Assembly (NCBI RefSeq): GCF_000737315.1
Contig: NZ_JMCB01000018.1
Location: forward strand, 124,001-188,000
Length of the DNA: 64,000 nt
DNA from: Hyalangium minutum
GTDB taxonomy: Bacteria > Myxococcota > Myxococcia > Myxococcales > Myxococcaceae
Reading direction: 5' to 3'
Position 1 is the stretch's first letter. Each line of letters starts with the position of its first letter. The position numbers and the translations under genes are program-made. Below are positions 16,069 to 63,957 of this stretch, piece by piece. Under the pieces are notes generated by a model, which saw only the letters and a program-made list of their open reading frames with translations, was not told the origin of the DNA and did not search any database.

Positions 16069-16233
16069 GGGTGTAGGCCAGTCTGGGAGGCCGGAGCATC
16101 TTAGAGCGCCCGCCCGACCAGGGGAATGCGCATAGGGGGGCAAGTGGAACACTCCGGGTGCGTTGTCCGTTGCCGGTGGGATAGGCCCCCATTAGGGTCT
16201 TCCCCACTTTTCACAGTGTCTTGGAGAATACGA

Positions 16234-17715: not shown

Positions 17716-17725
17716 GGAGCGAGCC

Positions 17726-25729: not shown

Positions 25730-25813
25730 CTACACCATTGTGCACATCGGCCGCTCTGAGGCGAGCGCCGAGCCTCCCTGGCCGTTAAGCCTCTTTCGCC
25801 CGTGCACCCTGGT

Positions 25814-28353: not shown

Positions 28354-28369
28354 CGCGGGCGGAGGCATC

Positions 28370-31516
<3,147 letters not shown>

Positions 31517-36221: not shown

Positions 36222-37640
<1,419 letters not shown>

Positions 37641-37643
<3 letters not shown>

Positions 37644-37804: not shown

Positions 37805-37833
37805 CAACACCCAGCAGCTCCCTTGGACGTGTG

Positions 37834-38757: not shown

Positions 38758-38778
38758 CCCCGCAGTGCAAACCCTTCC

Positions 38779-43187: not shown

Positions 43188-43225
43188 CCACGGCCCCTCC
43201 TCCGGGGGGCTGGGGGTGAGCCATC

Positions 43226-44482
43226 ATGCCTGTCTTCGAGTACAGAGGTCTCAACACTGCGGGTAAGACCATCAAGGGTCTGCTCGAGGCGGAGTCCCCC
43301 AAGTCGCTGCGTGCCCAGCTCCGCAAGGACGGCATCTTCCTCACGGACGTGCTGGGCCAGGCCGAGGGCAGCCGCGGCGCCGTCCGCAAGGGCGCGGGCG
43401 CGGACCTGGCTGCCCGCGAAGTCGACTTCCGCAAGCTGGGCGGCGGCCGCGTCACCACCGAGGACATCGCCATCACCACCCGGCAGCTCGCCACGCTGCT
43501 GGGGGCGGGCGTCACCCTCATCGAGTCCCTCACCGCGCTGGTGGACCAGGTGGAGAAGGAGCGCCTCAAGCGCATCCTGTCGGACGTGAAGCAGCGTGTG
43601 AACGAGGGCTCCTCGCTGGCGGACGCGCTGGGGCAGCACCAGAAGGTCTTCGGCTCGCTCTACGTGAACATGGTGCGAGCGGGCGAGGCCTCGGGCGCGC
43701 TGGACACGGTGCTCCTGCGGCTGGCGGACTTCACCGAGAGCCAGGCCAAGCTGCGGCAGAAGATCGTCGGCACCATGCTCTACCCGGCCATCATGCTGCT
43801 GGTGGGCGGCGGCATCCTCGTGCTGCTCATGGTGGTGGTGGTCCCCAAGGTGACGAAGATCTTCGACACCATGAAGGCCACCCTGCCGCTGCCGACGCGG
43901 GTGCTCATCGCCACGAGCAACTTCCTGCAGGACTACTGGTTCATCATCTTCCCGCTCTTGGCCCTGGGCAGCTTCCTGGCGTCGCGCTACTTCGCCAGCC
44001 CCGCGGGCAAGCCCAAGTGGGACCGGTTCGTGCTCAAGGCCCCCATCTTCGGCAGCCTGGTGCGGCTGCTGGCCATCTCCCGCTTCGCGCGCACGCTGGC
44101 CACGCTGCTCAAGAGCGGTGTGCCCCTGCTGGCCGCCATGGACATCGTCAAGGCCATCATCAGCAACTCGGTGCTGTCCGACGTGGTGGAGAAGGCCCGG
44201 GACGCCATCCGCGAGGGAGAGAGCATCGCCAACCCGCTCAAGCGCTCGGGTGAGTTCCCGCCGCTCGTCTACCACATGGTCTCCATTGGTGAGCGCTCGG
44301 GCCAACTGGAAGACATGCTGCTGTCCGTGGCGGACAGCTACGAAACACAGGTGAACGTGCGCATTGGCGCGCTCACCTCCCTGCTCGAGCCACTGCTCAT
44401 CGTGTTCATGGGCGCGGTGATTGCATTCGTTGCCTTCTCGATCCTGATGCCGATTCTGCAGGTGAACTCGGCCATCCGGTAA
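43226..44482 (+). CDS. gspF: Type II secretion inner-membrane platform protein GspF
   Basis: TRQLATLLGAG, NMVRAGEASGALD.VL.RLA, MLYP and GERSGQLEDML motifs. Confidence 0.95.
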   Translation: MPVFEYRGLNTAGKTIKGLLEAESPKSLRAQLRKDGIFLTDVLGQAEGSRGAVRKGAGADLAAREVDFRKLGGGRVTTEDIAITTRQLATLLGAGVTLIESLTALVDQVEKERLKRILSDVKQRVNEGSSLADALGQHQKVFGSLYVNMVRAGEASGALDTVLLRLADFTESQAKLRQKIVGTMLYPAIMLLVGGGILVLLMVVVVPKVTKIFDTMKATLPLPTRVLIATSNFLQDYWFIIFPLLALGSFLASRYFASPAGKPKWDRFVLKAPIFGSLVRLLAISRFARTLATLLKSGVPLLAAMDIVKAIISNSVLSDVVEKARDAIREGESIANPLKRSGEFPPLVYHMVSIGERSGQLEDMLLSVADSYETQVNVRIGALTSLLEPLLIVFMGAVIAFVAFSILMPILQVNSAIR

Positions 44483-44497
44483 CGGAGAGAGACGGCG

Positions 44498-44650
44498 ATG
44501 AACGACACGCTCAACCGGTGGATTCAACGTGTCACCCTGGCGGCCATGGTCGCCCTGGCGGCGGCCCTGCTGGCTGTGGGGGTGGCCCTCTACGCTCCGG
44601 CTACCGAGGCGCATGAGTCCCCGTCGAAGAGCGCCTTGCAGCAGCCCTGA
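44498..44650 (+). CDS. Small (50 aa) single-TM protein between gspF and gspG, below the ORF-track cutoff
   Basis: Hand translation: MNDTLNRWIQRVTLAAMVALAAALLAVGVALYAPATEAHESPSKSALQQP*; SD GGAGAG; fills the gap in operon orientation. Confidence 0.7.
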   Translation: MNDTLNRWIQRVTLAAMVALAAALLAVGVALYAPATEAHESPSKSALQQP

Positions 44651-44710
44651 CAAAAACGACCCGGCACGGCCGCCCGGCCTGCCAGAAAGTCATTCCGAGG
44701 AAGGACGCTT

Positions 44711-45133
44711 ATGACGACGCAACAGACGAAGAAGCAGCAGCGCCGCCGAAACCGAGGCATGACCCTCATCGAGATCATGGTGGTGATCACCATCCTGGGC
44801 CTGATCGCCGCCGCCGTGGGCGTGGCCGTCATCCCGAAGCTCGAAGAGGCCAAGCGCGACACCGCGCGCCTGGACATCAACTCCATCCACAACGCGCTGA
44901 AGCTCTACTACACCAAGGCGGGCAAGTACCCGGACACCGCCACGGGCCTCAAGGCGCTGGTGGACACCCAGAACCTGGACAAGTTGCCGGTGGATCCCTG
45001 GGGCAACGAGTACGTCTACATGAACGAGGGCGGCAAGCCCGTCATCGTCTCCTACGGCGCGGACGGCACCGTGGGCGGTGAGGGCAGCGACCAGGACATC
45101 TCGTCCAAGGATCTGGCCGCGGCGAAGAAGTAG
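44711..45133 (+). CDS. gspG: Major pseudopilin GspG
   Basis: Class III signal RNRG|MTLIEIMVV; LPVDPWGNEY and SYGADG..GGEG.D.DI Ca-loop. Confidence 0.92.
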   Translation: MTTQQTKKQQRRRNRGMTLIEIMVVITILGLIAAAVGVAVIPKLEEAKRDTARLDINSIHNALKLYYTKAGKYPDTATGLKALVDTQNLDKLPVDPWGNEYVYMNEGGKPVIVSYGADGTVGGEGSDQDISSKDLAAAKK

Positions 45134-45156
45134 CGCGCGGCGCGAGGAGCTCTCCC

Positions 45157-45585
45157 ATGGCGACCCCTGTCACCCTCCAGACCGAGCCGATGACGCCCCG
45201 CCCGGCCCGAGTGGGGCGGTACGTGGTCGCCGCGGCGTGCGTGCTGGCCACGGCGCTGGCCTTCGGCATCGCCTACGTGACGACGGACTGGAGCCTGCCT
45301 CCGAAGCAGCGCCTGGCGCTGGAGCAGATCCGGCGCCTGGAGGGCGTCTTCAAGATGTACCACCGCAGCATGGGGCGCTTCCCGCTCGAGGAAGAGGGCT
45401 TCGAGCCGCTCATCCAGGCGAAAGTGCTCACGGAGGTCCCCGTTGATCCGTGGGGCCACCCGTACGTGTACCGGTTCAACAACGAGCACACGGGCGTCCT
45501 CTCCTTCGGCGCGGACGGCGTGCCTGGAGGCGAGGGAGAGAACGCGGATATCACCAGCGGTGGACTGTGGAGGCCTCGGCAATGA
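45157..45585 (+). CDS. Second GspG-like protein lacking the prepilin cleavage motif
   Basis: T2SS G-type body (GRFP..EEG, VPVDPWGHPY, SFGADG..GGEGENADI); the TM helix has no G|(F/M)xxxE motif. Confidence 0.8.
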   Translation: MATPVTLQTEPMTPRPARVGRYVVAAACVLATALAFGIAYVTTDWSLPPKQRLALEQIRRLEGVFKMYHRSMGRFPLEEEGFEPLIQAKVLTEVPVDPWGHPYVYRFNNEHTGVLSFGADGVPGGEGENADITSGGLWRPRQ

Positions 45586-46307
45586 CACACCTGTCTCTGG
45601 CACGGAAGCGCCGGGCCCAGCGGGGCCTCACGCTCATCGAGATCATCATCGCGCTGCTCATCGCCGCGGTGCTCTTCGGAGCGGTGGTGTCGGGCGTTGG
45701 CGCGCTCACCGGCACCAAAGCCAAGGCGTCAGCCAGCGAGCTTGCGGGCATCATCCGCTCGCTCTACGACACGGCCGCGCTCACGGGGAAGACGTGCCGG
45801 CTGGTGTTCGAGCTGCCCCAGGCCAAGAGCGAGGATCCGGTGCGCTACCACGCCGAGTGCGCCGAGAGTGGCATCACCACCTCGCGCGATCGCGAGGCTT
45901 CGCTCCGGGACGAGAACAAGGCGAGGGATGACGAGAAGCGCCAGGGCCCCAGCAAGGACCCGCGGCGCAACTTCACCTCGCGCGACAGCGGCGGGGCGCC
46001 CAGCATGCAGGATCTGATCGAGCAGGAGCAGGGCCGCGTGGAGCAGTCGGCGCGCTACTCCAGCTACACCGCCGAAGAACTGGCGCCGCGGGAGCTGGCG
46101 GGCGCCGTGTCGCTCTCAGTGTGGACGCGCCACCAGCGGACCGCGGTGGACCAGGGCGTGGCCTATCTCTACTTCTTCCCCCAGGGCTACACGGAGAAGG
46201 CCCATGTGTACGTGCGGCAGGGCGATAACGTGTGGACGCTCGTCGTCTCGCCCCTGACGGGCAAGGTGACCATCGTCTCGGAGGAACTGGAGGTGCCTCG
46301 GTCATGA
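45582..46307 (+). CDS. gspH: Minor pseudopilin (GspH/FimT-like)
   Basis: AQRG|LTLIEIII; YLYFFPQG; position in the cluster. Confidence 0.75.
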   Translation: MTHLSLARKRRAQRGLTLIEIIIALLIAAVLFGAVVSGVGALTGTKAKASASELAGIIRSLYDTAALTGKTCRLVFELPQAKSEDPVRYHAECAESGITTSRDREASLRDENKARDDEKRQGPSKDPRRNFTSRDSGGAPSMQDLIEQEQGRVEQSARYSSYTAEELAPRELAGAVSLSVWTRHQRTAVDQGVAYLYFFPQGYTEKAHVYVRQGDNVWTLVVSPLTGKVTIVSEELEVPRS

Positions 46308-47191
46308 AGAACCGCAACCGTCGAGGCTTCACCCTGCTGGAGACCGTGGTCGCGCTCGCCATCCTCGTGATGGCGCTGATGGCGATCTTCGACCTGAACT
46401 CCGGCGCGATGTCCAACCACGTCTACACCAAGCACCTCACGGTGGCCGCGTTCCTGGCCCGCTCGAAGATGACGGACCTGGAGCAGAAGCTCTACGACGA
46501 CGGCTTCAACGCCGACGACGATGAGGAGTCCGGCGACTTCTCCGAAGAGGGCTGGCCCATGTTCAAGTGGCGCGCGAAGATCATCGCGCCCAAGACGGAT
46601 GGGGTGACTCCGGACCAGCTCATCGGCGCCATCTTCAACCTCCCCATCGGCGGAGACGGGGACATGGGCGGCATCGCCTCGCTCTTCGGCGGCGGCGCGG
46701 GAGGTGACAGCAAGAGCGGTGGCGGTCCCGTTCCGGCAGCGGGTGGCATGGCTGGCATGGCCGCAGGCATGGCGCAGCCCATGTTCACCCAGATGATCGA
46801 GCAGCTGAAGAGCTCCGTGCGCGAGGTCCACCTCACGGTGACATGGAGGGAGGGCAAGCAGGTGGAGAGCATGGACGTGGTGACGCACGTCGTGTCGCTC
46901 GGGCCGGGCTCGGATCGCAACGGTGGCGCCGCAGCCGCCGCGGCCGCCGCCCGGGGCCAGCAGCCTCCGGAGACGTCCAACCAGTGGGTGAACCCCGCCA
47001 CCGGCCAGCTCGTCCCCAACCCGATCCCCGGCCCCAACGGGCAGATGCTGGACCCCGTCACCCGCCAGCCCCTCGTCAACCGGCAGCAGCAGCTGGATCA
47101 GCTCAACTCGGGTCAGATCCCCGGCGGTGGACTCAACGTGCCCAGGACGGGTGGCGGCATCTTCAACCCTCGCGGAAAGAGCTCCCAATGA
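46304..47191 (+). CDS. gspI: Minor pseudopilin (GspI-like) with long Gly/Pro-rich inserts
   Basis: RRG|FTLLETVVALAIL; ATGA overlaps at both ends. Confidence 0.75.
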   Translation: MKNRNRRGFTLLETVVALAILVMALMAIFDLNSGAMSNHVYTKHLTVAAFLARSKMTDLEQKLYDDGFNADDDEESGDFSEEGWPMFKWRAKIIAPKTDGVTPDQLIGAIFNLPIGGDGDMGGIASLFGGGAGGDSKSGGGPVPAAGGMAGMAAGMAQPMFTQMIEQLKSSVREVHLTVTWREGKQVESMDVVTHVVSLGPGSDRNGGAAAAAAAARGQQPPETSNQWVNPATGQLVPNPIPGPNGQMLDPVTRQPLVNRQQQLDQLNSGQIPGGGLNVPRTGGGIFNPRGKSSQ

Positions 47192-47859
47192 GACGCACGA
47201 TCCGGGGTTTCACGCTGATGGAGGTCATGGTCGCCGTGGCGATCACCGCCCTTATGGGCACGATGGTGGCCATGGCCTTCCAGACGGGCTTCCGCGCCAA
47301 GGAGCTGGTGGAAGGCGAGGCCGACCACTACCGCATGGTCCGCGCGGCGCTCAACCGCATGGCCCGTGAGATTGGCTCCGCGTACGTGAGCGACCGGTAC
47401 GATCCCAAGCGTTACCGGGACTCCAACGACCGGCCCACCAACTTCGTCGGCGAGCGGGACCGGCTGCTGTTCACCACGTTCGCGCACCAGCGCCTGTACA
47501 CGGACTCCAAGGAGTCTGATCAGTCCGTGGTGGAGTACTTCGTGGAGAGCTCCACGGAGAAGGGCGCGCGGAGCCGGCAGGATCTGAAGCGGCGGGAGAA
47601 CCCGAACATCGGCGAGCGCATGGACCGGGGCGGCACCACGGACGCGCTCTTCGAGGGCGTGAAGAAGATCGAGTTCGCTTACTGGGACTCCGAGCGCAAG
47701 GAGTGGGAGGACGAGTGGGACACGCGCCGCAATGAGAAGAAGTCCTTCCTTCCCACCCGCGTGCGCATCACGATCTTCGCCCTGGACGAGAACGGTAAGG
47801 AGGCGCGTTACACCACCCAGGCCCGAATCATGCTGAACACGGAGCTGCCGAGGTTCTAA
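47188..47859 (+). CDS. gspJ: Minor pseudopilin GspJ
   Basis: IRG|FTLMEVMVAV; WEDEWD and LPTRVRI motifs typical of GspJ. Confidence 0.8.
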   Translation: MRRTIRGFTLMEVMVAVAITALMGTMVAMAFQTGFRAKELVEGEADHYRMVRAALNRMAREIGSAYVSDRYDPKRYRDSNDRPTNFVGERDRLLFTTFAHQRLYTDSKESDQSVVEYFVESSTEKGARSRQDLKRRENPNIGERMDRGGTTDALFEGVKKIEFAYWDSERKEWEDEWDTRRNEKKSFLPTRVRITIFALDENGKEARYTTQARIMLNTELPRF

Positions 47860-49224
47860 ATGCCCAGGTTCTTCTCACAGACGCCCAGGCGCCGCTCCGC
47901 CCGCCCGCCCGCTTCGCCCGCGAAGCGCGATCGCCGCGCGCGAGGTGTGGCGCTCATCATCGCCGTCATCTCCATCACCCTGCTCACCGTGGTGGCGACC
48001 GAGTTCGCCTACAACACGCGTGTGGATCTGCAGCTGGCCGCCAACCAGCGGGACGAGGTGCGCGCCTATTACATGGCCCGCTCCGGCCTGTCCCTGGGGC
48101 GCCTGTTGCTGCGCTTCCAGAAGCAGGTGGACCAGACGCCCATCCCCAACCTGGGCGGCATCCTCAGCGCCCTCACGGGTGGCGGTGCCGGGGCCGCGGG
48201 AGGCCAGCAGCAGGCCGCGCAGACGCTCAACATCCAGCTCTGGAAGCTGGCGCGCGTGGACTGCCACATGCTCAAGGGCCTGGTGCGCAGCGATGTGGGC
48301 GAGGGCAAGGACGGCAAGGCCGCGGAGCCCCAGGACGAGAACTTCACCATGGAGGACGAGGACGCGGAGCAGGCGCTGGGGGCTCAGCCCCTGAAGCGCT
48401 CCTTCGGCGGCTTCGAGGGCTGCTTCCTCGCGAACATCAGCGACGAGGAGGAGAAGCTCAACATCCACCGGCTGGCGGGCCTCGCCACGGATGCGCTGCC
48501 CACCGCGGCGCGCCTGCTGGACTTGCTCGGCGACAAGCGCTTCGAGTTCCTCTTCAACCGCGACGATGCCAACCGCGTCCGCGTCACCCCGCAGGACGTC
48601 GTCATCGCCCTCAAGGACTGGGTGGACGAGGACGAGGTGCAGTCCGCCATCAACGTGGCCGATCCCGTCAACCCCTTCGCCGCGGGCTTCTCGCCCGAGG
48701 ACAGCAACTACGACCGCTTCGACCCGCGCTACGAGGCCAAGAACGCCCGCTTCGACAGCGTGGACGAGCTGTACCGCGTCCACGGCGTCACCGACATGTT
48801 CATGGCCGCCTTCCGCGACCGGCTCACCGTGTACCCGGACGTGAACTCGCGCCCCAACGTGAACACGGATGACCCGATGATGATGTACATGGCCATCCTC
48901 TCCGTGGCGGACCCCTCGCACCCGGATCCGCGGCTGAAGGATCCCGTGTTCATCAACGAGGTCATCACCCGCATCCGCTCGGCGCGCATGTTCAGCTTCT
49001 TCGGCATGTCCGTGCAGGACTTCGTCAGCGTGGTGGAGTCCGCCGGCATCCCTATCAACCCGGCCATCAAGGCCAGCGCGACCAACAACCGGCTCGTGGG
49101 TGACAAGAGCCAGACCTTCACCATCAAGTCCGTGGGAGAGGCGGGCAGCGTGCAGAAGACCATCACCGCCGTGGTCAAGCTGGACGACTCGCTCGGCAAG
49201 CTCCTGTATTGGAGAGAGGAATAA
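47860..49224 (+). CDS. gspK: Minor pseudopilin GspK
   Basis: RG|VALIIAV (no Glu+5, as in GspK); DEEEKLNI, KDWVDED, KNARFDSVDEL..VHG and NVNT motifs. Confidence 0.9.
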   Translation: MPRFFSQTPRRRSARPPASPAKRDRRARGVALIIAVISITLLTVVATEFAYNTRVDLQLAANQRDEVRAYYMARSGLSLGRLLLRFQKQVDQTPIPNLGGILSALTGGGAGAAGGQQQAAQTLNIQLWKLARVDCHMLKGLVRSDVGEGKDGKAAEPQDENFTMEDEDAEQALGAQPLKRSFGGFEGCFLANISDEEEKLNIHRLAGLATDALPTAARLLDLLGDKRFEFLFNRDDANRVRVTPQDVVIALKDWVDEDEVQSAINVADPVNPFAAGFSPEDSNYDRFDPRYEAKNARFDSVDELYRVHGVTDMFMAAFRDRLTVYPDVNSRPNVNTDDPMMMYMAILSVADPSHPDPRLKDPVFINEVITRIRSARMFSFFGMSVQDFVSVVESAGIPINPAIKASATNNRLVGDKSQTFTIKSVGEAGSVQKTITAVVKLDDSLGKLLYWREE

Positions 49225-49226
49225 AG

Positions 49227-50819
49227 ATGGCCCGCATTCTTGGCCTCGATTTGGGCAGCTACTCCGTCAAGGGCGTCCTGTTCGAGTCGAACATCCGCGG
49301 CTACACCACCAAGGCCTATACCGAGGTGCGCCGCGCCGAGGGCGACCGCACCGAGACGCTCCGCGCCGCCGTGAAGGAGCTGCTTGCCCAGCAGCCCATG
49401 CAGGCCGATCAGGTCATCGTCGCCCTGCCCGGGCCTACGCTGTTGACCCACGCCTTCACCCTGCCCTTCAGCGACCCGAAGCGGCTGGAGGCCGCCCTCC
49501 CCTTCGAGGTGGAGAGCCAGCTGCCGTTCGACCTGAGCGAGGTCCTCTTCGACTACCAGGTGGTGGGCCAGAAGGCGAAGGCCAACAGCGACGTGCTCGT
49601 GGGCGTGGTCCGCAAGGAGGAGCTGAGCTGGCTCCTGGGCCTGCTCACCGAGCTGAAGGTGGACCCGCGCGTCATCACCCACCCCGGCATCACCTACCAG
49701 AACCTCTTCATCCAGACGCCCGCCATGTTCGACGGGCTCGGTGAGGCCGAGGCGATCGCCGTGGTGGACATCGGCCACGAGCGCACCACGGTGGCCATCG
49801 GCAAGCCGGGCGTGGGCGTGGAGTTCGCTCGCACCTTCGCGGGCGGCGGCAGGGATTTGAGCCGTGCGCTCGCCGCCGAGTTCCAGACGCCCCTGGCCGA
49901 GGCCCACCAGTGGAAGGAGACCTACGGCGCCATGGCGAGCGCCGCCACGGCCCAGGGCCCCGATGCCGAGCGCGCCGCCTCCGCCTTCGTGCGCGGCCTG
50001 CAGCCGGTGCTCCGCGAGCTGCGCCCCACCTTCAAGGCCTTCACCGCCCGCACCAAGCGCAACGTGGGCGCCGTGGTGCTGTGCGGCGGCACCGCCCGCC
50101 TCAAGGGGCTCGCCGAGCAACTGGAGAAGGATCTCCACCTCCAGGTGCGCGTGCTCGCGCTGCCCAACGAGGCAGCCTCCTCCATCCCCGCGGAGGTCCA
50201 GCCCTCGGCCGTCCAGGCCTATTCGTTGGCGCTGCGCGGGCAGGCCTCGGGTGCCAAGGCCCCGCGCTTCAACCTGCGCCGTGGCGAGTTCGGCTTCAAG
50301 GGCGACTTCGACTACGTGAAGGACAAGATCGGCCTGCTGGGCTCGTTCGCCGCCACCCTGCTGCTGCTGTTCATCGCCAGCGGCGTGGTGCGCAACACCG
50401 TGCTCGCGCGCAACGAGGCCAAGGTGGACGCGGTGCTCTGCAAGACCACCGAGCGCATCCTCGGCAAGTGCGAGACCAACTATGACCGCGCGCTCAACCT
50501 GCTGCGCGGCGTGGAGAGCCCGGCCGCCGCCCTCCCGAAGGTGACGGCGGTGAACCTCCTGGCGGAGGTGACGCAGAGGATCCCCCCGGAGGTGCCCGTG
50601 AAGATCGAGCGCATCCAGATCGATCTGGAGCGCGTCATCCTCCAGGGCGAGACGAACAGCTCCAAGGAGATCGACACCCTCACCACCGCCCTGAAGACGC
50701 ACCGGTGCTTCCGCGAGGTGAACCCGGGCAAGGTGGAGAAGACGCGGGACGGTCAGAAGGTGACCTTCCGTCTGGACATCCAGGTGCAGTGCCCCAACCA
50801 GCCGGGGGCGGAGAGCTAG
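49227..50819 (+). CDS. gspL: GspL (PilM-like actin-fold domain plus TM and periplasmic domain)
   Basis: ILGLDLGSYSVK, VVDIGHERT and VLCGGTARL actin-like motifs, then a TM and a PilN-like C-terminus. Confidence 0.85.
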   Translation: MARILGLDLGSYSVKGVLFESNIRGYTTKAYTEVRRAEGDRTETLRAAVKELLAQQPMQADQVIVALPGPTLLTHAFTLPFSDPKRLEAALPFEVESQLPFDLSEVLFDYQVVGQKAKANSDVLVGVVRKEELSWLLGLLTELKVDPRVITHPGITYQNLFIQTPAMFDGLGEAEAIAVVDIGHERTTVAIGKPGVGVEFARTFAGGGRDLSRALAAEFQTPLAEAHQWKETYGAMASAATAQGPDAERAASAFVRGLQPVLRELRPTFKAFTARTKRNVGAVVLCGGTARLKGLAEQLEKDLHLQVRVLALPNEAASSIPAEVQPSAVQAYSLALRGQASGAKAPRFNLRRGEFGFKGDFDYVKDKIGLLGSFAATLLLLFIASGVVRNTVLARNEAKVDAVLCKTTERILGKCETNYDRALNLLRGVESPAAALPKVTAVNLLAEVTQRIPPEVPVKIERIQIDLERVILQGETNSSKEIDTLTTALKTHRCFREVNPGKVEKTRDGQKVTFRLDIQVQCPNQPGAES

Positions 50820-50822
50820 GCC

Positions 50823-51395
50823 ATGAAGCAACTCCTCAATGATCTGCGGCTGCGCTTCGAGCAGCTCAGCGCCCGCGAGCGGCGCCTCGTGGTGGTGGCC
50901 GGCTCCGCCGTGCTGCTCTTCATCCTCTTCATCACGGTGCTGTCCTTCGCCAACAGCGCCAACGGCTACCGGCGCCGCACCCAAGACAAGCTCGCCAAGC
51001 TCCAGGAAGTGCAGCAACTGGCGGCCAGCTACGCCCAGGCCACTGCCGCTCGCAACGCCGTGGAGCAGCAGCTGACCAGCAGCGACGTCCGCCTGCTCAC
51101 GTACATCTCCGACAAGGCCAGCGCCGCGGGCCTGGACGCCCCCAACATGACGCCCAAGGGCGAGGTGGGCATCGGCGATGGGAACATCCTCGAGAGCAGC
51201 ATCGAGCTGACCTTCACCGACGTGGACCTGCGCAAGCTGACCGACTTCCTGCGCACCGTGGAGGGCGGCCCCGGCATCATCAAGGTCAAGTACCTGCGCC
51301 TGGAGCCCCGCCCGGCCACTGACACCCTGACGGCGTGGGCCACCGTCGCCACCTACCGGCTGAAGCAAGGCACGCAGCCGTCGACTCCGCAGTGA
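50823..51395 (+). CDS. gspM: GspM
   Basis: LSARERRLVVVAG start, TM, coiled coil and ferredoxin-like C-terminus. Confidence 0.85.
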   Translation: MKQLLNDLRLRFEQLSARERRLVVVAGSAVLLFILFITVLSFANSANGYRRRTQDKLAKLQEVQQLAASYAQATAARNAVEQQLTSSDVRLLTYISDKASAAGLDAPNMTPKGEVGIGDGNILESSIELTFTDVDLRKLTDFLRTVEGGPGIIKVKYLRLEPRPATDTLTAWATVATYRLKQGTQPSTPQ

Positions 51396-51399
51396 CATC

Positions 51400-52413
51400 A
51401 TGGCTACCGAGACCAAGACCGCCCGCTGGAAGATCATCGTCGGCTACAGCGCCTTCTCGCTGTTCGCCCTCGTCCTCTGCCTGTTCCTCACCTTCCCGTA
51501 TGGCGCGCTGCGCGCGCGCATCGCCACCGAGGCGCTGAAGGCCGGCTATGTGGTCCGCATCGACACACTGCGCCCCGGCCTCGTTGGGCTCACCGCCAAG
51601 GGAGTGAAGGTGAGCCAGCCGCCCGCGCCCCTCAGCGCCGAGACCGTTGCCGCCCTCACCAGCGGCGATCCGTCGACCGCGCGCATGCTCGGGCCGGCGG
51701 AGCTGGGCGAGGCGCTGACCATCGACTCCGTGTCCCTGCGCCCCACCCTGTTCCCGCTGGGCGTCGCCTTCGACTCCAACGCCCTGGGCGGCACCATCAC
51801 CGGCAACATCGGTGGCCGCAAGACGCTGGAGGTGCGCGTCAAGCTGGCCAAGCTCGATCCCGGCGCAGGCAACCTCAAGAACTTCACCGGGCTGGATCTG
51901 GAGGGCAGCCTGAATGGCTCGCTGAACCTGAGCCTGCCCGCGCCCGAGGGCACCGGTGGCCGCCCCGGCGAGCCGGATCTGTCCCAGGCCGATGGCGAGC
52001 TGGTGCTCGATGGCCAGAACCTGCTGCTCAAGGGCAGCGTCGAGGGCTCGGGCGTGGCCAGCCAGGGCAGCCCCGTGTCCCTGCTCTTCCCGGGCGGCCT
52101 GCCTCGCATCCCCGTGGGCGAGCTCTCCGCCAACATCCGCTTCGAGAAGGGCCTGGGCACCGTGGACAAGCTCCGGCTCGGCGGCGATCAGCTGGAGATC
52201 CTCGGCACCGGCACCCTCAAGCTCAACAAGCGCCTGCAGTACGCAGAGCCCGCCATGGACATCAAGATCCGCGTCGAGCCGGAGCTCGTGAAGGAGCTGG
52301 GCACCGCCGGCCTGGGCCTGTCCATCCTGCCTCCGGACAAGGAGGACCCGAAGTTCCGCGCGGGGCGCCTCAGCGGCTCGATGGGTAAGCTCTCTTTCCT
52401 CGGCAAGCGTTGA
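51400..52413 (+). CDS. gspN: GspN
   Basis: FLTFPY after an N-terminal TM; beta-rich body; last gene of the cluster. Confidence 0.8.
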   Translation: MATETKTARWKIIVGYSAFSLFALVLCLFLTFPYGALRARIATEALKAGYVVRIDTLRPGLVGLTAKGVKVSQPPAPLSAETVAALTSGDPSTARMLGPAELGEALTIDSVSLRPTLFPLGVAFDSNALGGTITGNIGGRKTLEVRVKLAKLDPGAGNLKNFTGLDLEGSLNGSLNLSLPAPEGTGGRPGEPDLSQADGELVLDGQNLLLKGSVEGSGVASQGSPVSLLFPGGLPRIPVGELSANIRFEKGLGTVDKLRLGGDQLEILGTGTLKLNKRLQYAEPAMDIKIRVEPELVKELGTAGLGLSILPPDKEDPKFRAGRLSGSMGKLSFLGKR

Positions 52414-52425
52414 TACGTTGGGGGC

Positions 52426-52428
<3 letters not shown>
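52411..52428 (+). promoter_or_regulatory. Extended -10 promoter overlapping the gspN stop; leaderless start of the hybrid kinase
   Basis: TG-A-TACGTT (52411-52419; TGA is the gspN stop), 6 nt, ATG 52426; no properly spaced SD. Confidence 0.45.
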
Positions 52429-56211
<3,783 letters not shown>

Positions 56212-56222
56212 ATCTGAACCGT

Positions 56223-58277
56223 TCATCGCTTGCCCTCCCCCATGCGCCGGGTACGGATCAGCGCCAGCACCATGCATAGAAAGGAACCTCCAGCCCAGCC
56301 GCTCGATTGGGCGCCACAGCCACAGCCCGAGGAGCTATCAGGCCCCTCCGCGTCCGGATTCTCCACCGCGACCTTGAACTGGCAGCGCTTGGTGTTCCCC
56401 GCCTGATCCGTGGCCGTCACTGTGACAGGGGTGACGTCGCCGATGGGAAGCGCGCTGCCGTTGGGAGGATCGAAGGCAATGCTCACGGGGGAGAGCGTGT
56501 CGCTCGCCACCACCTCTGGATACTGGACCACGACGCTCCCGGTCCCCGAGGCCTCGATGAAAGTGTACGAAGGGCAGCGAAGGACCGGAGGCGTGGTGTC
56601 CTGAACGGTCACCGGGAAGGTGCAGCTGGCGGTGTTGCCGGCCTCATCCCGGGCGGTGACGGCCACTTCGGTGCGCCCGAGCGGGAAAGTGCTTCCGGAC
56701 GCCTGGCTGTACTCGAGCACGGGCGCCTCCGTGAAGTCATCCGTCGCGATGGCGGCGAAGGACACGGGCATCCCCTGGAGGCTCGTGGCCTCGACGGAGA
56801 TGGCCGCCGGGCAGGTCACCAGGGGCGGAGCCCGGTCGCAGAGATCCAGGGCCCAGAGTTCCTCTCCCGCCTCGGGATCATGCGCGACGAAGAAGAGCTT
56901 TGAACCGGCGCGGGTCAAGTCACGCGGAAAGGAGCCCCCCGGGCCCGGGACGAGATCCATCACCTGGACCGTGCCTTCCACGGTCCCATCGCTCTTCCAC
57001 AGCTCGGTGCCGCTGCTGGCATCAGAGCCCGCGAAGTAGAGGACTTTCCCCACGCTCTTCATGGGGGGCGGGTGGCCTGAGCTGTCGATCCCCTCCCTCT
57101 TGAGCCAGCGGGTTCCCTCCTCCGTGCCATCGGTGCGCCACAGCCCGATCTGGCCCTGGTCGTCATAGGCCAGGAAGAAGAGCTGGTCACCGGCTGCCGT
57201 GAGCCCCTGTGGACTACTCCCCTCTGAGCCCTGCACCTGGCCCATCACCCGCACCGTACCGCTCTCCGACCCATCGCTCACCCATAGCTTCCGGCCAAAG
57301 AACGGCTCGGTCGCGGCGAAGAAGAGCTTGTTGCCTCCGACAACAGTCAGGGAGGTGGGGTTCGAGTCGGCGAGCTCGGGCCAGATGTTGGCGACGATGT
57401 CGGTGCCCAAGAGGGTGCCGTCGCTCCACCACACCTCACGGCCCCACTCATCGTCATCCGCGGAGAAGTAGGCACGCCCGTTCATGACGACCATGCTCTG
57501 AGGGCTCGAGTCGTAGAGCTTGAAGATGTTCTTCACCATCGCCGTGCCCTGAGCGGTGCCATCGCTGATCCACAGCTCCTGGCCCAGCGCTCCGTCATTC
57601 GCTGAGAAGAGGAGCTTGTCGCCCAGGGCGGTGAGCTCGGAGGCCACGGCCCCGAAGGAGCCTGGGCGGATGTCCTTCACCAAGCCGGTGCTCCCGTCCG
57701 TCCGGTGGTGCATCCACAGCTCGCTGCCGTGAGTGCCGTCGTCCGCTGTGAAGAAGAGCCGCTCACCCACCACGGTGAGCTCGGCGGGAGAGGAGTCCGC
57801 TGCACCCGGGGCCACGTCCGCGACCCGCTTTGTCCTCTCTGGGGTGCCGTCGCTCCACCAGAGTTCCCGACCGGAGACACCCTCCGATGCGGAGAAGAAG
57901 AGGCCATCCTGAGCCGGCGTCAGTTCCGTTGGCGAGGAGGGGGACGCCCCTGGGGAGATGTCCTTCACGCGCTGCGTGCCCGCAGCGGTGCCATCACTTC
58001 GCCAGAGTTCCTCGCCCAACGCCCCGTCGGTCGCGCCGAAGAAGAGCCACCCTCTGGCTGCGGCCAGCTGCGGAACCCTGTCGTCCACTCTGGATGGGAA
58101 GGCGCTGGCGGGGCCTGGATGGATGTCCCGCACGCGCGCGGGCGGCGTGCACTGGCTGTCGAGCGTGAAGCGCGAGTGGAGGCTGAGCGAAGCCTCGCCG
58201 GGTTCCGAGAGGGGTCCACAGCCCGTCAGCCACCAGAAGCACCCGAGGAGAACAGCGACGACGCGCCAAACGATCAT
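56223..58277 (-). CDS. ELWxxDGT-repeat beta-propeller surface protein with HYR domains and a MYXO-CTERM-like tail
   Basis: Lipobox LTGC; about 8 (E)LWxSDGT repeats; two HYR-like units (DRAPP..TCP, DTTPP.L.CP); C-terminal SSGCGC, hydrophobic stretch and RTRR. Confidence 0.85.
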   Translation of the reverse strand: MIVWRVVAVLLGCFWWLTGCGPLSEPGEASLSLHSRFTLDSQCTPPARVRDIHPGPASAFPSRVDDRVPQLAAARGWLFFGATDGALGEELWRSDGTAAGTQRVKDISPGASPSSPTELTPAQDGLFFSASEGVSGRELWWSDGTPERTKRVADVAPGAADSSPAELTVVGERLFFTADDGTHGSELWMHHRTDGSTGLVKDIRPGSFGAVASELTALGDKLLFSANDGALGQELWISDGTAQGTAMVKNIFKLYDSSPQSMVVMNGRAYFSADDDEWGREVWWSDGTLLGTDIVANIWPELADSNPTSLTVVGGNKLFFAATEPFFGRKLWVSDGSESGTVRVMGQVQGSEGSSPQGLTAAGDQLFFLAYDDQGQIGLWRTDGTEEGTRWLKREGIDSSGHPPPMKSVGKVLYFAGSDASSGTELWKSDGTVEGTVQVMDLVPGPGGSFPRDLTRAGSKLFFVAHDPEAGEELWALDLCDRAPPLVTCPAAISVEATSLQGMPVSFAAIATDDFTEAPVLEYSQASGSTFPLGRTEVAVTARDEAGNTASCTFPVTVQDTTPPVLRCPSYTFIEASGTGSVVVQYPEVVASDTLSPVSIAFDPPNGSALPIGDVTPVTVTATDQAGNTKRCQFKVAVENPDAEGPDSSSGCGCGAQSSGWAGGSFLCMVLALIRTRRMGEGKR

Positions 58278-58560
58278 GAAGTCCCCCAAGGCCCGTGTTG
58301 CCAACCATCGTATCCGCAGTTGTCGGCCGCGGACGCCCCGTCCACGCCGGTGGACAGTCTCAGGCCTCCACCGCCCGTAAGTGCCTGTTTTCTGGATGGC
58401 TGGAGCTTGGCCCACCGCGTGCTGTACCAGCGCATAGACCGCAGTCCATCCCATCCAACCTCGTGAGGCACACGAAAATATGCCTACCCATCAAGTCTCT
58501 TTTGTTGCCAACGCACCGACCCCACGTGTAAAGCCGCCCCCGTCCTCAGGAAAGGTGGCC

Positions 58561-60310: not shown

Positions 60311-60820
60311 ATGAGTGCCAGTGTCGCCGTGCTCCCCCCCATCTCGCAGCTCTACCGCCAACATCGCACACGGGCCCTGGCCATTGCGCGGCGGATAGTG
60401 GGAGACGTGGATGACGCGGAGGATGTGGTTCAGGACGTGTTCACGCGGCTGGCTCGCAAGCCCGAGGGCTTCACCGGGCGGGCGGCGTGGACCACCTGGC
60501 TGCACCGCGTCATGGTCAACAGCAGCATCAACTGGCTGCGGGCGCGCAAGCGCCGCGAGAAGCTGAGCTACGAGCTCCAGGAGCCCACTTCTCCGGAGGC
60601 CCAGGCGGTGGGCGAGGAGATGCAGCGGCACTTCGGGGATGCGCTGAAGCAGGTGAGTGACTTGCAGCGCCAGGTGCTGTGGCTGCGCGAGGTGCGCGGC
60701 TTCAGCTATCCGGAGATCGCCCACGTGCTGCACATCCCCGAGGGCACGGTGAAGAGCTCGCTGCACCGCGGGCGCGTGCGGGCGCTCGAGGTGCTCGAGG
60801 AGCGTGGGCAGCGCCCGTGA
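60311..60820 (+). CDS. ECF RNA polymerase sigma factor
   Basis: DAEDVVQDVF, WLHRVMVN and GFSYPEIA..L.IPEGTVKS.LHRGR (regions 2 and 4); SD AGGAGG. Confidence 0.92.
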   Translation: MSASVAVLPPISQLYRQHRTRALAIARRIVGDVDDAEDVVQDVFTRLARKPEGFTGRAAWTTWLHRVMVNSSINWLRARKRREKLSYELQEPTSPEAQAVGEEMQRHFGDALKQVSDLQRQVLWLREVRGFSYPEIAHVLHIPEGTVKSSLHRGRVRALEVLEERGQRP

Positions 60821-60853
60821 GCTGAGGGCGCTGCCGCCGGCCCCGCCTCTGGC

Positions 60854-62863
60854 CTACGGAGGCGGGATCGTCACAGGGACGCTGGAGGTGTTGTTGTCCA
60901 GCGTCGCCTCCTGGAAGGCGCGCGCCGGGTTGAGCGTCACCTGGAGGCGGTAGTCGCCCGGGGCCAGGTCCGTGATGTCCAGCCACTGGCAGTCCAGCGT
61001 GTTGCCGTAGAGATCGGACCAGCCGCGCTGGATGCCCTGGTTGGAGCAGTCGAACTCCTTGGAGCAAGACACGCTGGGCCCCGCCACCACGCGCTGCGTG
61101 TCCTCCATGCAGTAGGCCTGCTTGCGGCCGGTGAGCACCACGTGGCCCTGCAGATCCAGCAGGGCGTACGAGGCAAAGCCGCTGAAGTGGTAGTGGCCAT
61201 GGCAGGGCGAGAAGGTGAACAGGTCCGGCCGATCCGCAGGCGGCGGCACCGTGGCGGTGGCGAAGCCCTGGTTCACCGCCTCCACGCTGAAGCGCAGCAC
61301 ACGGCGCTCGCCAATGCCCGTCACGCACTCCTCCACCTTCGCGCACGAGTTCTCCGTGACGTAGACCGAGTCAAAGAGGATCTCGTTCTTGAGCCGCTGC
61401 TCGTCGACGATCAGATCCGGCAGCGACTCGGTGACAGGGTGGCAGACACAGTCCGAGCCGCAGAACTCCGTGGCCCCGCAGCCCGGCGAGCACTGGGGCC
61501 GCAGGTGGTTGCAGTCCTGGAAGGTCTGGCACAGTCCCGAGGACGGCACGCAGAGCTTTGCCTCCGGGCAGAAGCCGCACTGGCCGCCGCAGCCGTCGTC
61601 GCCGCACTCCTTTCCATCACACTGCGGCGTGCACGGGCTCTGCAGGCAGCGCCCGCTGATGCAGACCTGGCCCGCGTCACACGCTCCACAGTTGCCGCCA
61701 CAGCCGTCGCTGCCGCCGCAGTACACGCCGTCGCACTTGGGGACGCAGCCGTCCGGGGTGAAGCGCGTCTTCAGCGTGAACGCACCGGACTGCGCGGCAT
61801 CGAAGCCGTCGACGATGAGGTAGTAGGTGCCCGGATCCAGCGCCACGGTGATGCGCGAGCCGTAGTCCCCCGGGGGCGACGAGTCATCGCTGCACGCCAC
61901 CGTCTTGTTGGGCGTGTTGTCGAGGCAGTCCGCCGCGCCGTCCGCCGTGCGCTTCTTGCGCAAGTGGAGCACCGTGTCGTAGCCGGAGACGCGCGCCTCC
62001 AAGCCCATCCGCTGGGTGAGGGTGAAGGTGTAGACGGACTCCACTGCGGTGCTGGTGCTGTTGCACGAGGGCACCGCCTGATGGATGCCCGCGGAAGTAT
62101 CGCCCTGGAGGGTGTGGTCCCCAGCCAGCGGCGTCCCGTCCGCCACCAGGGGCAGCGGCGAGCGGCAGGTGCCCGGCTGCGCGTCGGACTTGCACTGGAA
62201 GATCGCCTGCGCGCACCCCTGGCCCGCGCCACAGGTGCCGCATTCGCCGCCACACCCGTCATCTCCGCACTGCTTGCCCGCGCAGTCAGGGGTGCAGGAA
62301 GGACCGGCCCGGCACGTCGCGCACGTCCCAGAGGGCGTGTGCACGCAGATGCGCCCCACCTCGTCGCAGTCGTCTATCGTGCACTCTGTGCCATCGTCGC
62401 AGGCCGAGCGCGAGCTGACGCACTGGCCGTTGGAGAAGCGCTCCTCGCCGTTGCAGAAAATGCCATCCGAGCACGTCACCTCCACCGAGGTCCGGACGGT
62501 GTTCGCGAAGGCCTTGTCCTTGTGGTGGGGGGTCCACGTGAGCTCGTGGAGGCCCGGCAAGGCGGGCGTGGCGACGGTGCCCGTGAACGTGGCCGCCTCT
62601 CCAGGCTTCACGTTCTTCTCGAGTTGGAGCGTACCGCCGCTCCAGCCCTCCTGCTCCTGAGGAGAGAGGACGAGCGTCACGTCTCCCTTCTTCCAGGTCG
62701 CGGTGCCCGAGTTCTTCACGGCCACCGAGAGCGCCCCGTTGCCCGCAGGCAGCACATGCTGCGGGGCAGCGGGCTCCAGCTCGGTGAACTCGTAGGTGTC
62801 ATCGTCGCAGCCGCTCAGCAGAACGGCGACGGTTCCCAGCACGCACAGCAGGATCTTGCGCAA
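60854..62863 (-). CDS. Lysyl oxidase family lipoprotein with Ig-like, Cys-rich and PPC-like domains
   Basis: TTG start after GAGGGGG; lipobox LSGC; C-terminal LOX domain with CHGHYH, GRKQAYCMEDT and GWSDLYGNTLDCQWLDITD. Confidence 0.9.
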   Translation of the reverse strand: MRKILLCVLGTVAVLLSGCDDDTYEFTELEPAAPQHVLPAGNGALSVAVKNSGTATWKKGDVTLVLSPQEQEGWSGGTLQLEKNVKPGEAATFTGTVATPALPGLHELTWTPHHKDKAFANTVRTSVEVTCSDGIFCNGEERFSNGQCVSSRSACDDGTECTIDDCDEVGRICVHTPSGTCATCRAGPSCTPDCAGKQCGDDGCGGECGTCGAGQGCAQAIFQCKSDAQPGTCRSPLPLVADGTPLAGDHTLQGDTSAGIHQAVPSCNSTSTAVESVYTFTLTQRMGLEARVSGYDTVLHLRKKRTADGAADCLDNTPNKTVACSDDSSPPGDYGSRITVALDPGTYYLIVDGFDAAQSGAFTLKTRFTPDGCVPKCDGVYCGGSDGCGGNCGACDAGQVCISGRCLQSPCTPQCDGKECGDDGCGGQCGFCPEAKLCVPSSGLCQTFQDCNHLRPQCSPGCGATEFCGSDCVCHPVTESLPDLIVDEQRLKNEILFDSVYVTENSCAKVEECVTGIGERRVLRFSVEAVNQGFATATVPPPADRPDLFTFSPCHGHYHFSGFASYALLDLQGHVVLTGRKQAYCMEDTQRVVAGPSVSCSKEFDCSNQGIQRGWSDLYGNTLDCQWLDITDLAPGDYRLQVTLNPARAFQEATLDNNTSSVPVTIPPP
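61560..62300 (-). repeat. Three Cys-rich repeats CxPxCxG(K/V)xCG(x)xDGCGGxCGxC
   Basis: CTPDCAGKQCGDDGCGGECGTC, CVPKCDGVYCGGSDGCGGNCGAC and CTPQCDGKECGDDGCGGQCGFC; boundaries approximate. Confidence 0.8.
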
Positions 62864-62958
62864 GGTGTCCCCCTCAGTGGTTTTCGACAGGTTCGCCTGG
62901 AGTCCGGGCCTTTGTCACGCTCCCTGGCCGTTCCCCCCTCCGAGCGCCGGGCAGGGAC

Positions 62959-62976
62959 TGCTACGCTGCGAACATG
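62959..62976 (+). promoter_or_regulatory. Extended -10 promoter; leaderless start of moxR
   Basis: TG-C-TACGCT (62959-62967), 6 nt, ATG 62974; no SD. Confidence 0.5.
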
Positions 62977-63957
62977 CGTACGGCATCCGCCCCGATCTCC
63001 CCTCCTCCGAGCGCCGAGCAGGCCGAGAAGGCTCGCACCCTCATCACCCGGTTGCTGGGGAGCCTGGAGAAGGCCATCCGGGGCAAGCGCGAGGCGCTGG
63101 AGTTGGTGCTGTGCTGCGTCGCGGCAGGCGGACACGTGCTGCTGGAGGACGTGCCGGGCACGGGGAAGACGACGCTGGCGAAGGCGCTGGCCGTGAGCAT
63201 GGGCGGGCAGTTCAAGCGGGTTCAGTTCACGCCGGATCTGCTGCCCACGGACATCGTCGGCACCTCGCTGTTCAACCCCCAGGACGGCACGTTCCGGTTC
63301 AAGCCGGGCCCCATCTTCGCCAACGTGCTCATCGCCGATGAGATCAACCGCGCCTCGCCGCGCACCCAGTCGGCGCTGCTGGAGGGGCTCTCCGAGCAGC
63401 AGGTGACGGTGGATGGCGAGACGCGCACCCTGCCCTCGCCGTTCCTGTGCATCGCCACGCAAAACCCGGTGGAGTTCCACGGCACCTATCCACTGCCGGA
63501 GGCCTCGCTGGATCGCTTCGCCGCGCAGCTCTCGCTCGGCTACCCGCCCGAGGCCGAGGAGCGAGCCCTGCTCACCGAGCAACGCGGACCGAAGCCCGCC
63601 ACACCGCTGGAGCCGGTCTGCACCTTGGAGGAGGTGGTGGCGCTGCAGCGAGCCGTGGAGGAAGTGCGAATGGAGGCCTCGGTCGCGGATTACCTGCTGC
63701 GCGTGGTGCACGCCACGCGAGGCCATGCCAGCGTGCGGCTGGGAGTCTCTACACGCGGAGCGCTCCTGTACGCCCGGATGGCCCGGGCCCGGGCGCTCGC
63801 GAGTGGCCGGGACTTCGTGCTGCCGGAGGATCTCAAGGCGATGGCGGTGCCGGTGCTCACCCACCGGCTGGTGTTGGATACCCGAGCCCGCTACGCCGGC
63901 ACGGACAAGCAGGGCCTCACGCGCGAGCTCGTCTCCTCCGTCCCGCTGCCCCGCTAG
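62974..63957 (+). CDS. MoxR family AAA+ ATPase
   Basis: GHVLLEDVPGTGKT, RVQFTPDLLPTDIVG, ADEINRASPRTQSALLE and ATQNPVE..GTYPLPEA.LDRF motifs. Confidence 0.95.
   Translation: MRTASAPISPPPSAEQAEKARTLITRLLGSLEKAIRGKREALELVLCCVAAGGHVLLEDVPGTGKTTLAKALAVSMGGQFKRVQFTPDLLPTDIVGTSLFNPQDGTFRFKPGPIFANVLIADEINRASPRTQSALLEGLSEQQVTVDGETRTLPSPFLCIATQNPVEFHGTYPLPEASLDRFAAQLSLGYPPEAEERALLTEQRGPKPATPLEPVCTLEEVVALQRAVEEVRMEASVADYLLRVVHATRGHASVRLGVSTRGALLYARMARARALASGRDFVLPEDLKAMAVPVLTHRLVLDTRARYAGTDKQGLTRELVSSVPLPR

Follow-up and report, generated by a model that had tools for sequence, protein, structure and literature searches.

What might a bacterium do with a lysyl oxidase (LOX)? Among prokaryotic LOX, enzymology was found for one archaeal protein only. 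The question is raised here by a 64,000-nucleotide stretch of Hyalangium minutum DNA (positions 124,001 to 188,000 of contig NZ_JMCB01000018.1; hereafter the window), whose minus strand carries at 60854–62863 a complete gene for a 669-residue LOX-family lipoprotein. A reading made from the letters alone (the sequence-only reading) had described the product as a lysyl oxidase with its full set of copper and cofactor residues, mounted on a lipid-anchored stalk. We find that the protein is, as judged from its sequence, a member of the LOX family and most likely a copper-dependent amine oxidase of the cell envelope that would carry the lysine tyrosylquinone (LTQ) cofactor. The identification is correct but already in the literature and databases; what is added here is a full domain map, the conservation of the accessory modules, a probable disulfide between Cys600 and a short Cys-rich pre-domain, and the finding that the gene has no conserved partner.

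The catalytic domain

A search with the Pfam profile PF01186, which the sequence-only reading had recommended, places a LOX catalytic domain at residues 482–661 (60881–61420, minus strand), where it scores 112.9 bits, the cut-off being 20.4 (E 2.1e-32), and covers 189 of the 204 profile positions. When the protein was compared with the Protein Data Bank (PDB) by phmmer, human LOXL2 (5ZE3) was the only match, at E 2.2e-24. These matches lie far beyond chance and identify the product of 60854–62863, on sequence grounds, as a member of the LOX family. To relate the two proteins residue by residue, the chain numbering of 5ZE3 was converted to human LOXL2 (hLOXL2) numbering by means of the published construct and residue list (PMC5899467). 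His555, His557 and His559 of the motif CHGHYH (residues 554–559; 61187–61204, minus strand) then correspond to the copper ligands H626, H628 and H630 of the HxHxH hairpin, and Cys554, which opens the motif, to the disulfide cysteine C625. Lys581 of GRKQAYC (61121–61123, minus strand) aligns with Lys653, and Tyr619 of DLYGN (61007–61009, minus strand) with Tyr689; these two residues are the LTQ precursors, the tyrosine serving also as fourth metal ligand in the precursor state. Further disulfide cysteines find their counterparts as well, C507 and C513 in C573 and C579, C585 in C657, C606 in C673 and C625 in C695. The Ca2+ site formed in hLOXL2 by D549, L550, E722, N727 and N728 is represented by D483, L484, E652, N657 and N658, and its D724 by Ser or Thr at position 654. 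A CQWLDITD segment is encoded at 60968–60991 (minus strand). The His triad, the Lys/Tyr pair and the flanking cysteines claimed in the sequence-only reading are thus all recovered in the 5ZE3 alignment, and every position that it gave for them is right to the base.

Conservation was assessed in an alignment of 44 full-length homologues, 49–79% identical to the query. The three histidines, together with Cys554, and both Lys581 and Tyr619 are invariant in all 44. So are D483, E652, N657 and N658 of the Ca2+ site (L484 is kept in 39 of the 44) and the cysteines of three of the five LOXL2 disulfides (C507/C554, C513/C625 and C585/C606). Invariance of the catalytic and Ca2+-site residues while overall identity falls as low as 49% indicates purifying selection on catalysis. 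A full-length AlphaFold2 model built from the same alignment has a mean predicted local distance difference test score (pLDDT) of 86.3 and a predicted template modelling score (pTM) of 0.80. Its catalytic domain superimposes on 5ZE3 chain A in Foldseek with a root-mean-square deviation of 2.5 Å over 205 columns (31% identity, E 4e-14), and the predicted structure contains the β-sandwich core with ES1 and ES2 segments that defines the LOX fold.

The gene and its export signal

The reading frame starts at a TTG, and its stop codon lies within the coordinates given above. A Shine-Dalgarno-like GAGGGGG (62869–62875, minus strand), read straight from the upstream sequence, stands 5 nt ahead of the TTG. 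Third-position GC of the frame is 0.91, the usual value for genuine genes of the H. minutum genome, in a window of about 68% G+C. An identical 669-residue product is called in the public assembly GCA_000737315.1 (contig JMCB01000018.1), and the JMCB01000018 accession series belongs to H. minutum DSM 14724T (PMC5441343). A scan of 60700–63100 returned no match to a sigma-70-type promoter or an intrinsic terminator, a result that is uninformative for a myxobacterium.

Residues 1–19 (62807–62863, minus strand) match the pattern of a signal peptide ending in a lipobox, LLSG followed by Cys19. The N-terminus, MRK-ILLCVLGTVAVL-LSG and then Cys19 (in full, MRKILLCVLGTVAVLLSG followed by C), has the textbook succession of basic n-region, hydrophobic h-region and lipobox, and the mature protein would begin C-D-D-D-T-Y-E-F. 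A lipobox-like signal is kept in most of the 44 homologues, and a few carry ordinary signal peptides instead. The lipoprotein signal noticed in the sequence-only reading is therefore found again as a pattern match, and it implies that the protein is exported, with predicted lipidation at Cys19. The 50 cysteines of the mature protein also argue for folding outside the cytoplasm.

The accessory modules

Between the anchor and the catalytic domain lies a series of modules that Pfam detects poorly. The first, at about residues 26–129 (62477–62788, minus strand), is a predicted Ig-like β-sandwich of the NBR1 "FW" type. In the H. minutum protein itself the Pfam N_BRCA1_IG match stays below threshold (24.2 bits against 28, E 5e-5); PF16158 is, however, precomputed on many homologues, and Foldseek pairs the region with the FW domains of NBR1 and ILRUN (4OLE and 6VHI) at probability 1.00 and TMt 0.52–0.63. 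This FW-like domain is the least conserved part of the protein, with 37% mean identity among homologues as against 64% for the PPC-like domain described below and 70% for the LOX domain, and it is absent from forms of about 565 residues in Kofleriaceae and Polyangia. It is followed by a Cys-rich module A (residues 131–189; 62297–62473, minus strand) with nine invariant cysteines and a Dictyostelium-repeat-like CDDGxxCTxDxC motif; its match to Dicty_CTDC is below threshold (E 4.5e-4).

Three repeats of eight cysteines each come next, the first separated from the other two by the PPC-like domain. Repeat 1, CTPDCAGKQCGDDGCGGECGTCGAGQGCAQAIFQC, occupies residues 190–224 (62192–62296, minus strand), and all its cysteines are invariant; repeats 2 (residues 373–406; 61646–61747) and 3 (residues 411–445; 61529–61633), on the same strand, were delimited by pairwise repeat comparison and the homologue alignment. 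They share the pattern C-x3-C-x4-C-x4/5-C-x3-C-x2-C-x5-C-x4/6-C, and any two of them have 19 identical residues per 35–36. Neither Pfam nor NCBIfam matches the repeats even at E≤10, and the literature consulted, which deals with horizontal gene transfer and with the "cysteine-rich repeats" of eukaryotes, does not seem to describe this module. A search of the window for paralogues yielded neither a second LOX domain nor an additional 8-Cys repeat. Used as a query, the repeat (C..C....CG.DGCGG.CG.C...) retrieved about 50 loci in metagenome-assembled genomes (MAGs), from Myxococcales and also from Saccharibacteria, Patescibacteria, Woesearchaeota and Oligoflexales. This distribution suggests a widespread, unnamed extracellular module.

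The region between repeats 1 and 2 (residues 234–372; 61748–62164, minus strand) is, from domain model and Foldseek together, a β-sandwich resembling PPC and collagen-binding domains (CBD). The Pfam PPC score is again below threshold (19.5 bits against a cut-off of 25.9), and one homologue, P0073, has a precomputed PF04151 match. Modelled alone, the region reaches a pLDDT of 87 and finds the collagenase PPC domain 5SV5 (E 4e-5, TMt 0.68) and the ColG CBD 1NQJ (TMt 0.70) at about 15% identity. Other Foldseek matches are PliG and the claudin-binding C-terminal domain of Clostridium perfringens enterotoxin, TMt being about 0.5–0.7 overall. The structural relatives of the predicted domain are all binding modules, which does not imply that it binds collagen.

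The sequence-only reading had listed an Ig-like domain, a PPC-like domain and three Cys-rich repeats. The first two are supported by the annotation of homologues and by Foldseek, their Pfam scores being sub-threshold, and the repeats are indeed three, with eight cysteines each; two Cys-rich modules, at residues 131–189 and 451–481, come in addition to its list. Its "stalk" fares less well. The pTM of the full-length model favours a compact multi-domain body over an extended stalk; the model also packs the accessory modules, which are conserved, against one another with confidence.

A Cys-rich pre-domain and Cys600

The module at residues 451–481 (61421–61513, minus strand) directly precedes the catalytic domain and contains five cysteines, C458, C462, C468, C472 and C474. 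The LOX domain itself has seven, an odd count; the extra one, Cys600, is invariant, is absent from LOXL2 and lies in the loop that separates Lys581 from Tyr619. An alignment was made of 24 short LOX homologues of the representative library, most of which consist of a single domain. C600 is present in all eight that have both C472 and C474, and none of the 13 that lack C600 has both C472 and C474. Several of these short proteins have exactly five plus seven cysteines in pre-domain and catalytic domain. From cysteine parity and this co-occurrence we infer that Cys600 is disulfide-bonded to the five-Cys pre-domain. If so, the functional catalytic unit of the subfamily would start near residue 456. 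C451 and module A may in addition take part in a long-range bond.

Distribution and genomic context

A protein search of 5.8 billion sequences gave 1745 matches at E≤1e-5, the best 120 of which have the same full-length architecture or the same architecture minus the FW-like domain. Named matches include those from Hyalangium (74–75% identity), Stigmatella aurantiaca (69%) and Polyangium (57–60%), and from MAGs assigned to Polyangiaceae, Polyangiales, Polyangia and Kofleriaceae. Full-length orthologues thus occur across the Myxococcota, under the NCBI name "lysyl oxidase family protein". With the LOX domain alone as query, 4491 clusters (50% identity level) were found at E≤1e-3 and 498 at E≤1e-30, in many architectures. 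Many proteins of the representative library (P0122, P0123, P0126, P0129 and others) contain two to four separate LOX-domain stretches per polypeptide; we know of no discussion of this architecture for bacterial LOX.

The family has a prior record. The S. aurantiaca orthologue is in the set of Grau-Bove et al. 2015, with a LOX domain at 479–655 and a signal peptide. A 2018 alignment that includes it found the Lys, the Tyr, the His motif and 6 of 10 cysteines conserved in myxobacterial LOX, as against 2–3 of 10 in archaeal and betaproteobacterial LOX (PMC6508830). The statement in the sequence-only reading that bacterial homologues are known but largely uncharacterised agrees with two published accounts (PMC4448552, PMC6452851), and our literature search for a characterised bacterial LOX found none.

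In the window the LOX gene is monocistronic. It converges with the gene of an extracytoplasmic function (ECF) sigma factor, whose stop codon ends at 60820, and diverges from that of a MoxR-type AAA ATPase starting at 62974; a DUF58 gene lies past MoxR in the source contig. Six loci of Hyalangium and Archangiaceae preserve the order MoxR, LOX, ECF sigma, FHA-FHA-sigma54 activator; the neighbours in Polyangium loci are entirely different. An all-against-all comparison of flanking open reading frames from 30 loci revealed no neighbour family common to different clades; LOX alone is shared. The gene stands alone, with no conserved partner, and since no neighbour is conserved between clades the context gives no functional clue. 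Operon-based inference was dropped, the gene order being confined to Hyalangium/Archangiaceae loci. Copper control by the adjacent sigma factor, taken as CorE-like, was likewise rejected: this 178-residue protein contains no Cys and lacks a C-terminal Cys-rich extension.

Within the six Hyalangium/Archangiaceae loci (L001–L004, L011 and L012) LOX is 69–79% identical, as against 90–94% for MoxR and 84–91% for the ECF sigma factor; the faster divergence of LOX sits mostly in its FW-like domain. The gap between the LOX and ECF sigma genes is 33 nt in the window versus 0.6–1.1 kb in three Hyalangium loci (L001, 7995–9081; L003, 7989–8623; L012, 7998–8994), which may hold an extra small gene or insertion at this place.

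Proposed mechanism and function

We consider it probable that the product is an exported, disulfide-rich, lipid-anchored amine oxidase of the LOX family; our guess as to substrate is peptidyl lysine, with the resulting aldehydes going on to cross-links. By analogy with the chemistry of human LOXL2 (PMC5899467) and the archaeal HTU-LOX (PMC6452851), the steps would be as follows. Sec-dependent export, lipidation at Cys19 and oxidative folding would come first. Cu(II) bound to His555, His557 and His559 would then drive oxidation of Tyr619, and the oxidised tyrosine would cross-link with Lys581 to give LTQ. The mature cofactor would turn primary amines into aldehydes with release of NH3 and H2O2. 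The candidate substrates are the lysine ε-amino groups of proteins and peptides, whether foreign or belonging to envelope or matrix, and the aldehydes so formed could condense into covalent cross-links. A macromolecular substrate is favoured because the catalytic domain is fused to conserved binding-type modules (FW-like and PPC-like) and is predicted to be membrane-tethered rather than soluble. The PPC-like domain is nearly as conserved as the LOX domain, a further point in favour of this reading.

Several points weigh against this assignment. Asp at +2 retains lipoproteins in the inner membrane of Escherichia coli. The mature LOX N-terminus has Asp at this position, and by E. coli rules it would be retained in the inner membrane. 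In Myxococcus xanthus, a Lys at +2 marks inner-membrane lipoproteins and an Ala at +7 those of the matrix (PMC3222651); CDDDTYEF has neither. The LOXL2 disulfides C663–C685 and C732–C746 and the C-terminal ES3 segment have no counterpart: the positions of the former are occupied by Gln or Arg at 591 and by W615, and the latter is lost together with the ES3 tail, since the protein stops at residue 669. As the five-disulfide framework is regarded as variable among LOX enzymes (PMC6452851), the two missing bonds are not disqualifying. The literature searched contained no biochemical assay of any myxobacterial LOX. Finally, HTU-LOX is promiscuous toward small amines, and no phenotype was found with β-aminopropionitrile (BAPN) (PMC6452851).

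This last point leads to a serious rival, to which we allow a real if minor chance. The chemistry would be the same, with small free amines (lysine, cadaverine, putrescine and other biogenic amines) as the real substrates in place of proteins to be cross-linked. The useful product could be H2O2, used as a weapon on contact with prey or competitors, or else NH3 and aldehydes for nitrogen scavenging. Myxobacteria are predators, and a membrane anchor would focus H2O2 at the interface between cell and prey. For HTU-LOX, which acts on many small amines, a role in the use of atypical amines was proposed by the authors (PMC6452851). However, large conserved binding-type modules are hard to reconcile with a small-molecule oxidase, the cofactor tyrosine of hLOXL2 is surface-exposed in a manner that suits macromolecular substrates (PMC5899467), and no amine transporter or aldehyde dehydrogenase is conserved beside the LOX gene.

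A more specific form of the peptidyl-lysine proposal is that lysine-containing proteins are cross-linked by allysine chemistry at the myxobacterial surface, in the matrix, or in the spore or fruiting-body coat, the FW-like and PPC/CBD-like modules picking the substrates. We think this rather unlikely as it stands. If true, the cross-linking of animal matrix would have a bacterial parallel, in a lineage that became multicellular independently. Myxobacteria build multicellular structures and a protein-rich matrix, and they also kill prey; a surface LOX could plausibly serve either activity.

Two other possibilities deserve mention. The enzyme might act in defence: through oxidation of their primary amines it would inactivate, at the envelope, amine-rich antibiotics or cationic peptides such as aminoglycosides and polymyxin-type lipopeptides. 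Some peptide antibiotics are reportedly substrates of HTU-LOX, and its authors mention resistance as a possible role (PMC6452851); for the H. minutum protein, however, the proposal is purely speculative and seems to us highly improbable, given that the gene has no resistance context (the RND efflux genes of the window are about 30 kb off) and that its position is conserved amid core-type genes in Archangiaceae. Still harder to credit is a surface protein, adhesive or structural, that has kept a LOX-like fold but no catalysis, which would account for the many binding-type and Cys-rich modules and for the fact that no activity has been demonstrated, but which sits badly with five catalytic or cofactor residues and Ca2+-site residues that are invariant in 44 of 44 homologues while identity drops to 49%. 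An envelope amine oxidase acting on peptidyl lysine remains our preferred reading.

Other genes in the window

A type II secretion cluster in which no GspJ was recognised occupies 37831–52413 (plus strand). Its genes all point the same way and comprise GspC, D, E, F, G, H-like, I-like, K, L (PilM/PilN-like), M and N. It is preceded by a sigma54 response regulator (36222–37643) and followed by a 1261-residue hybrid histidine kinase (52426–56211). Adjoining it, at 56223–58454 (minus strand), is a gene whose 743-residue product combines eight ELWxxDGT repeats with two HYR domains. The C-terminus of this product, GCGCGAQSS...FLCMVLALIRTRR, is one that we take to resemble a MYXO-CTERM sorting tag; NCBIfam reports none at E≤1e-3. 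A large-subunit catalase with a DJ-1/PfpI-like C-terminal domain (E 4e-181) is encoded at 23079–25208 (plus strand), about 36 kb from LOX, no link being implied. The secretion cluster (about 8.4–25 kb away) and the catalase are close to the LOX gene in position only, and this proximity was not used as a link.

The minus strand further encodes a 451-residue protein (4369–5724) that has at its C-terminus an AHH nuclease domain of the HNH/EndoVII superfamily (E 4e-20), a type of domain that occurs at polymorphic toxin tips, and a 395-residue protein (9103–10290) with a "putative ice-binding-like adhesive" domain, pAdhesive_15 (E 1e-52). On the plus strand are a TldD/PmbA metallopeptidase pair (16126–19087) and a three-gene resistance-nodulation-division (RND) efflux system (25802–31516) made up of outer-membrane factor, membrane-fusion protein and AcrB-type pump.

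Comparison with known systems

Copper amine oxidases, which use topaquinone (TPQ), and LodA-type lysine ε-oxidases, which use cysteine tryptophylquinone (CTQ), are likewise amine oxidases with a quinone cofactor, and their reaction yields H2O2. LodA-type enzymes are antimicrobial H2O2 generators and in this respect parallel the small-amine alternative. The folds and cofactors of both groups are unrelated to those of LOX, and the Pfam, PDB phmmer and Foldseek searches gave no match of the H. minutum protein to either.

The closest biochemical precedent is HTU-LOX of Haloterrigena turkmenica, which shares with the H. minutum protein a LOX domain with the His triad and Lys/Tyr pair. In vitro this prokaryotic enzyme, in which the set of residues is the same, shows an amine oxidase activity that depends on Cu and is sensitive to BAPN (PMC6452851), which supports the catalytic competence of prokaryotic LOX domains. 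It differs in being archaeal and simply built, with a short N-terminal stretch that is autoinhibitory and with fewer conserved cysteines; unlike the H. minutum protein, it has neither lipid anchor nor accessory domains. The Sorangium cellulosum LOX (WP_012233967) is, like ours, a LOX from a myxobacterium that is joined to a Cys-rich region, presumably cross-linked by disulfides (PMC6452851). By description, its Cys-rich domain is C-terminal and its LOX domain spans about 250–530, whereas the accessory modules of the H. minutum protein are all N-terminal.

With human LOXL2 (5ZE3), and by extension with animal LOX and LOXL1–4, the resemblance extends to the predicted fold, the HxHxH copper site, the Lys/Tyr pair, the CQW(L/V)DITD strand, the Asp, Glu and two Asn of the Ca2+ site and the cysteines of three of the five disulfides. 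In contrast to LOXL2, the H. minutum protein has Cys600 and the five-Cys pre-domain, probably bonded to each other. The N-terminal partners also differ, being FW-like, Cys-rich and PPC-like modules in H. minutum and SRCR domains or a BMP-1-cleaved propeptide in animals, and a predicted lipid anchor replaces the secretion of animal LOX.

The nearest relatives are the orthologues of S. aurantiaca, H. versicolor and H. rubrum (69–75% identity) and of Polyangium spumosum (57%), all at 100% coverage. They share the lipobox followed by CDDD (the S. aurantiaca N-terminus reads MRK...TGCDDD), the domain order and the Cys pattern, and differ by sequence divergence only, greatest in the N-terminal FW-like domain. 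The homologue of S. aurantiaca DW4/3-1 (P0020) is gi 488687725 in Grau-Bove et al. 2015. Published surveys scored LOX of this type as no more than a LOX domain plus signal peptide, because Pfam misses the other modules. What emerges is no new kind of gene; rather, myxobacterial LOX are conserved assemblies of about 670 residues, composed of lipid anchor, FW-like domain, Cys-rich modules, PPC-like domain, a pre-domain probably tied by a disulfide, and LOX domain, and not the "simple" LOX domains of Pfam-based surveys. Such assemblies are well suited to a first test, by genetics and biochemistry, of what LOX does in bacteria, and S. aurantiaca, whose orthologue is built on the same plan, is genetically manipulable.

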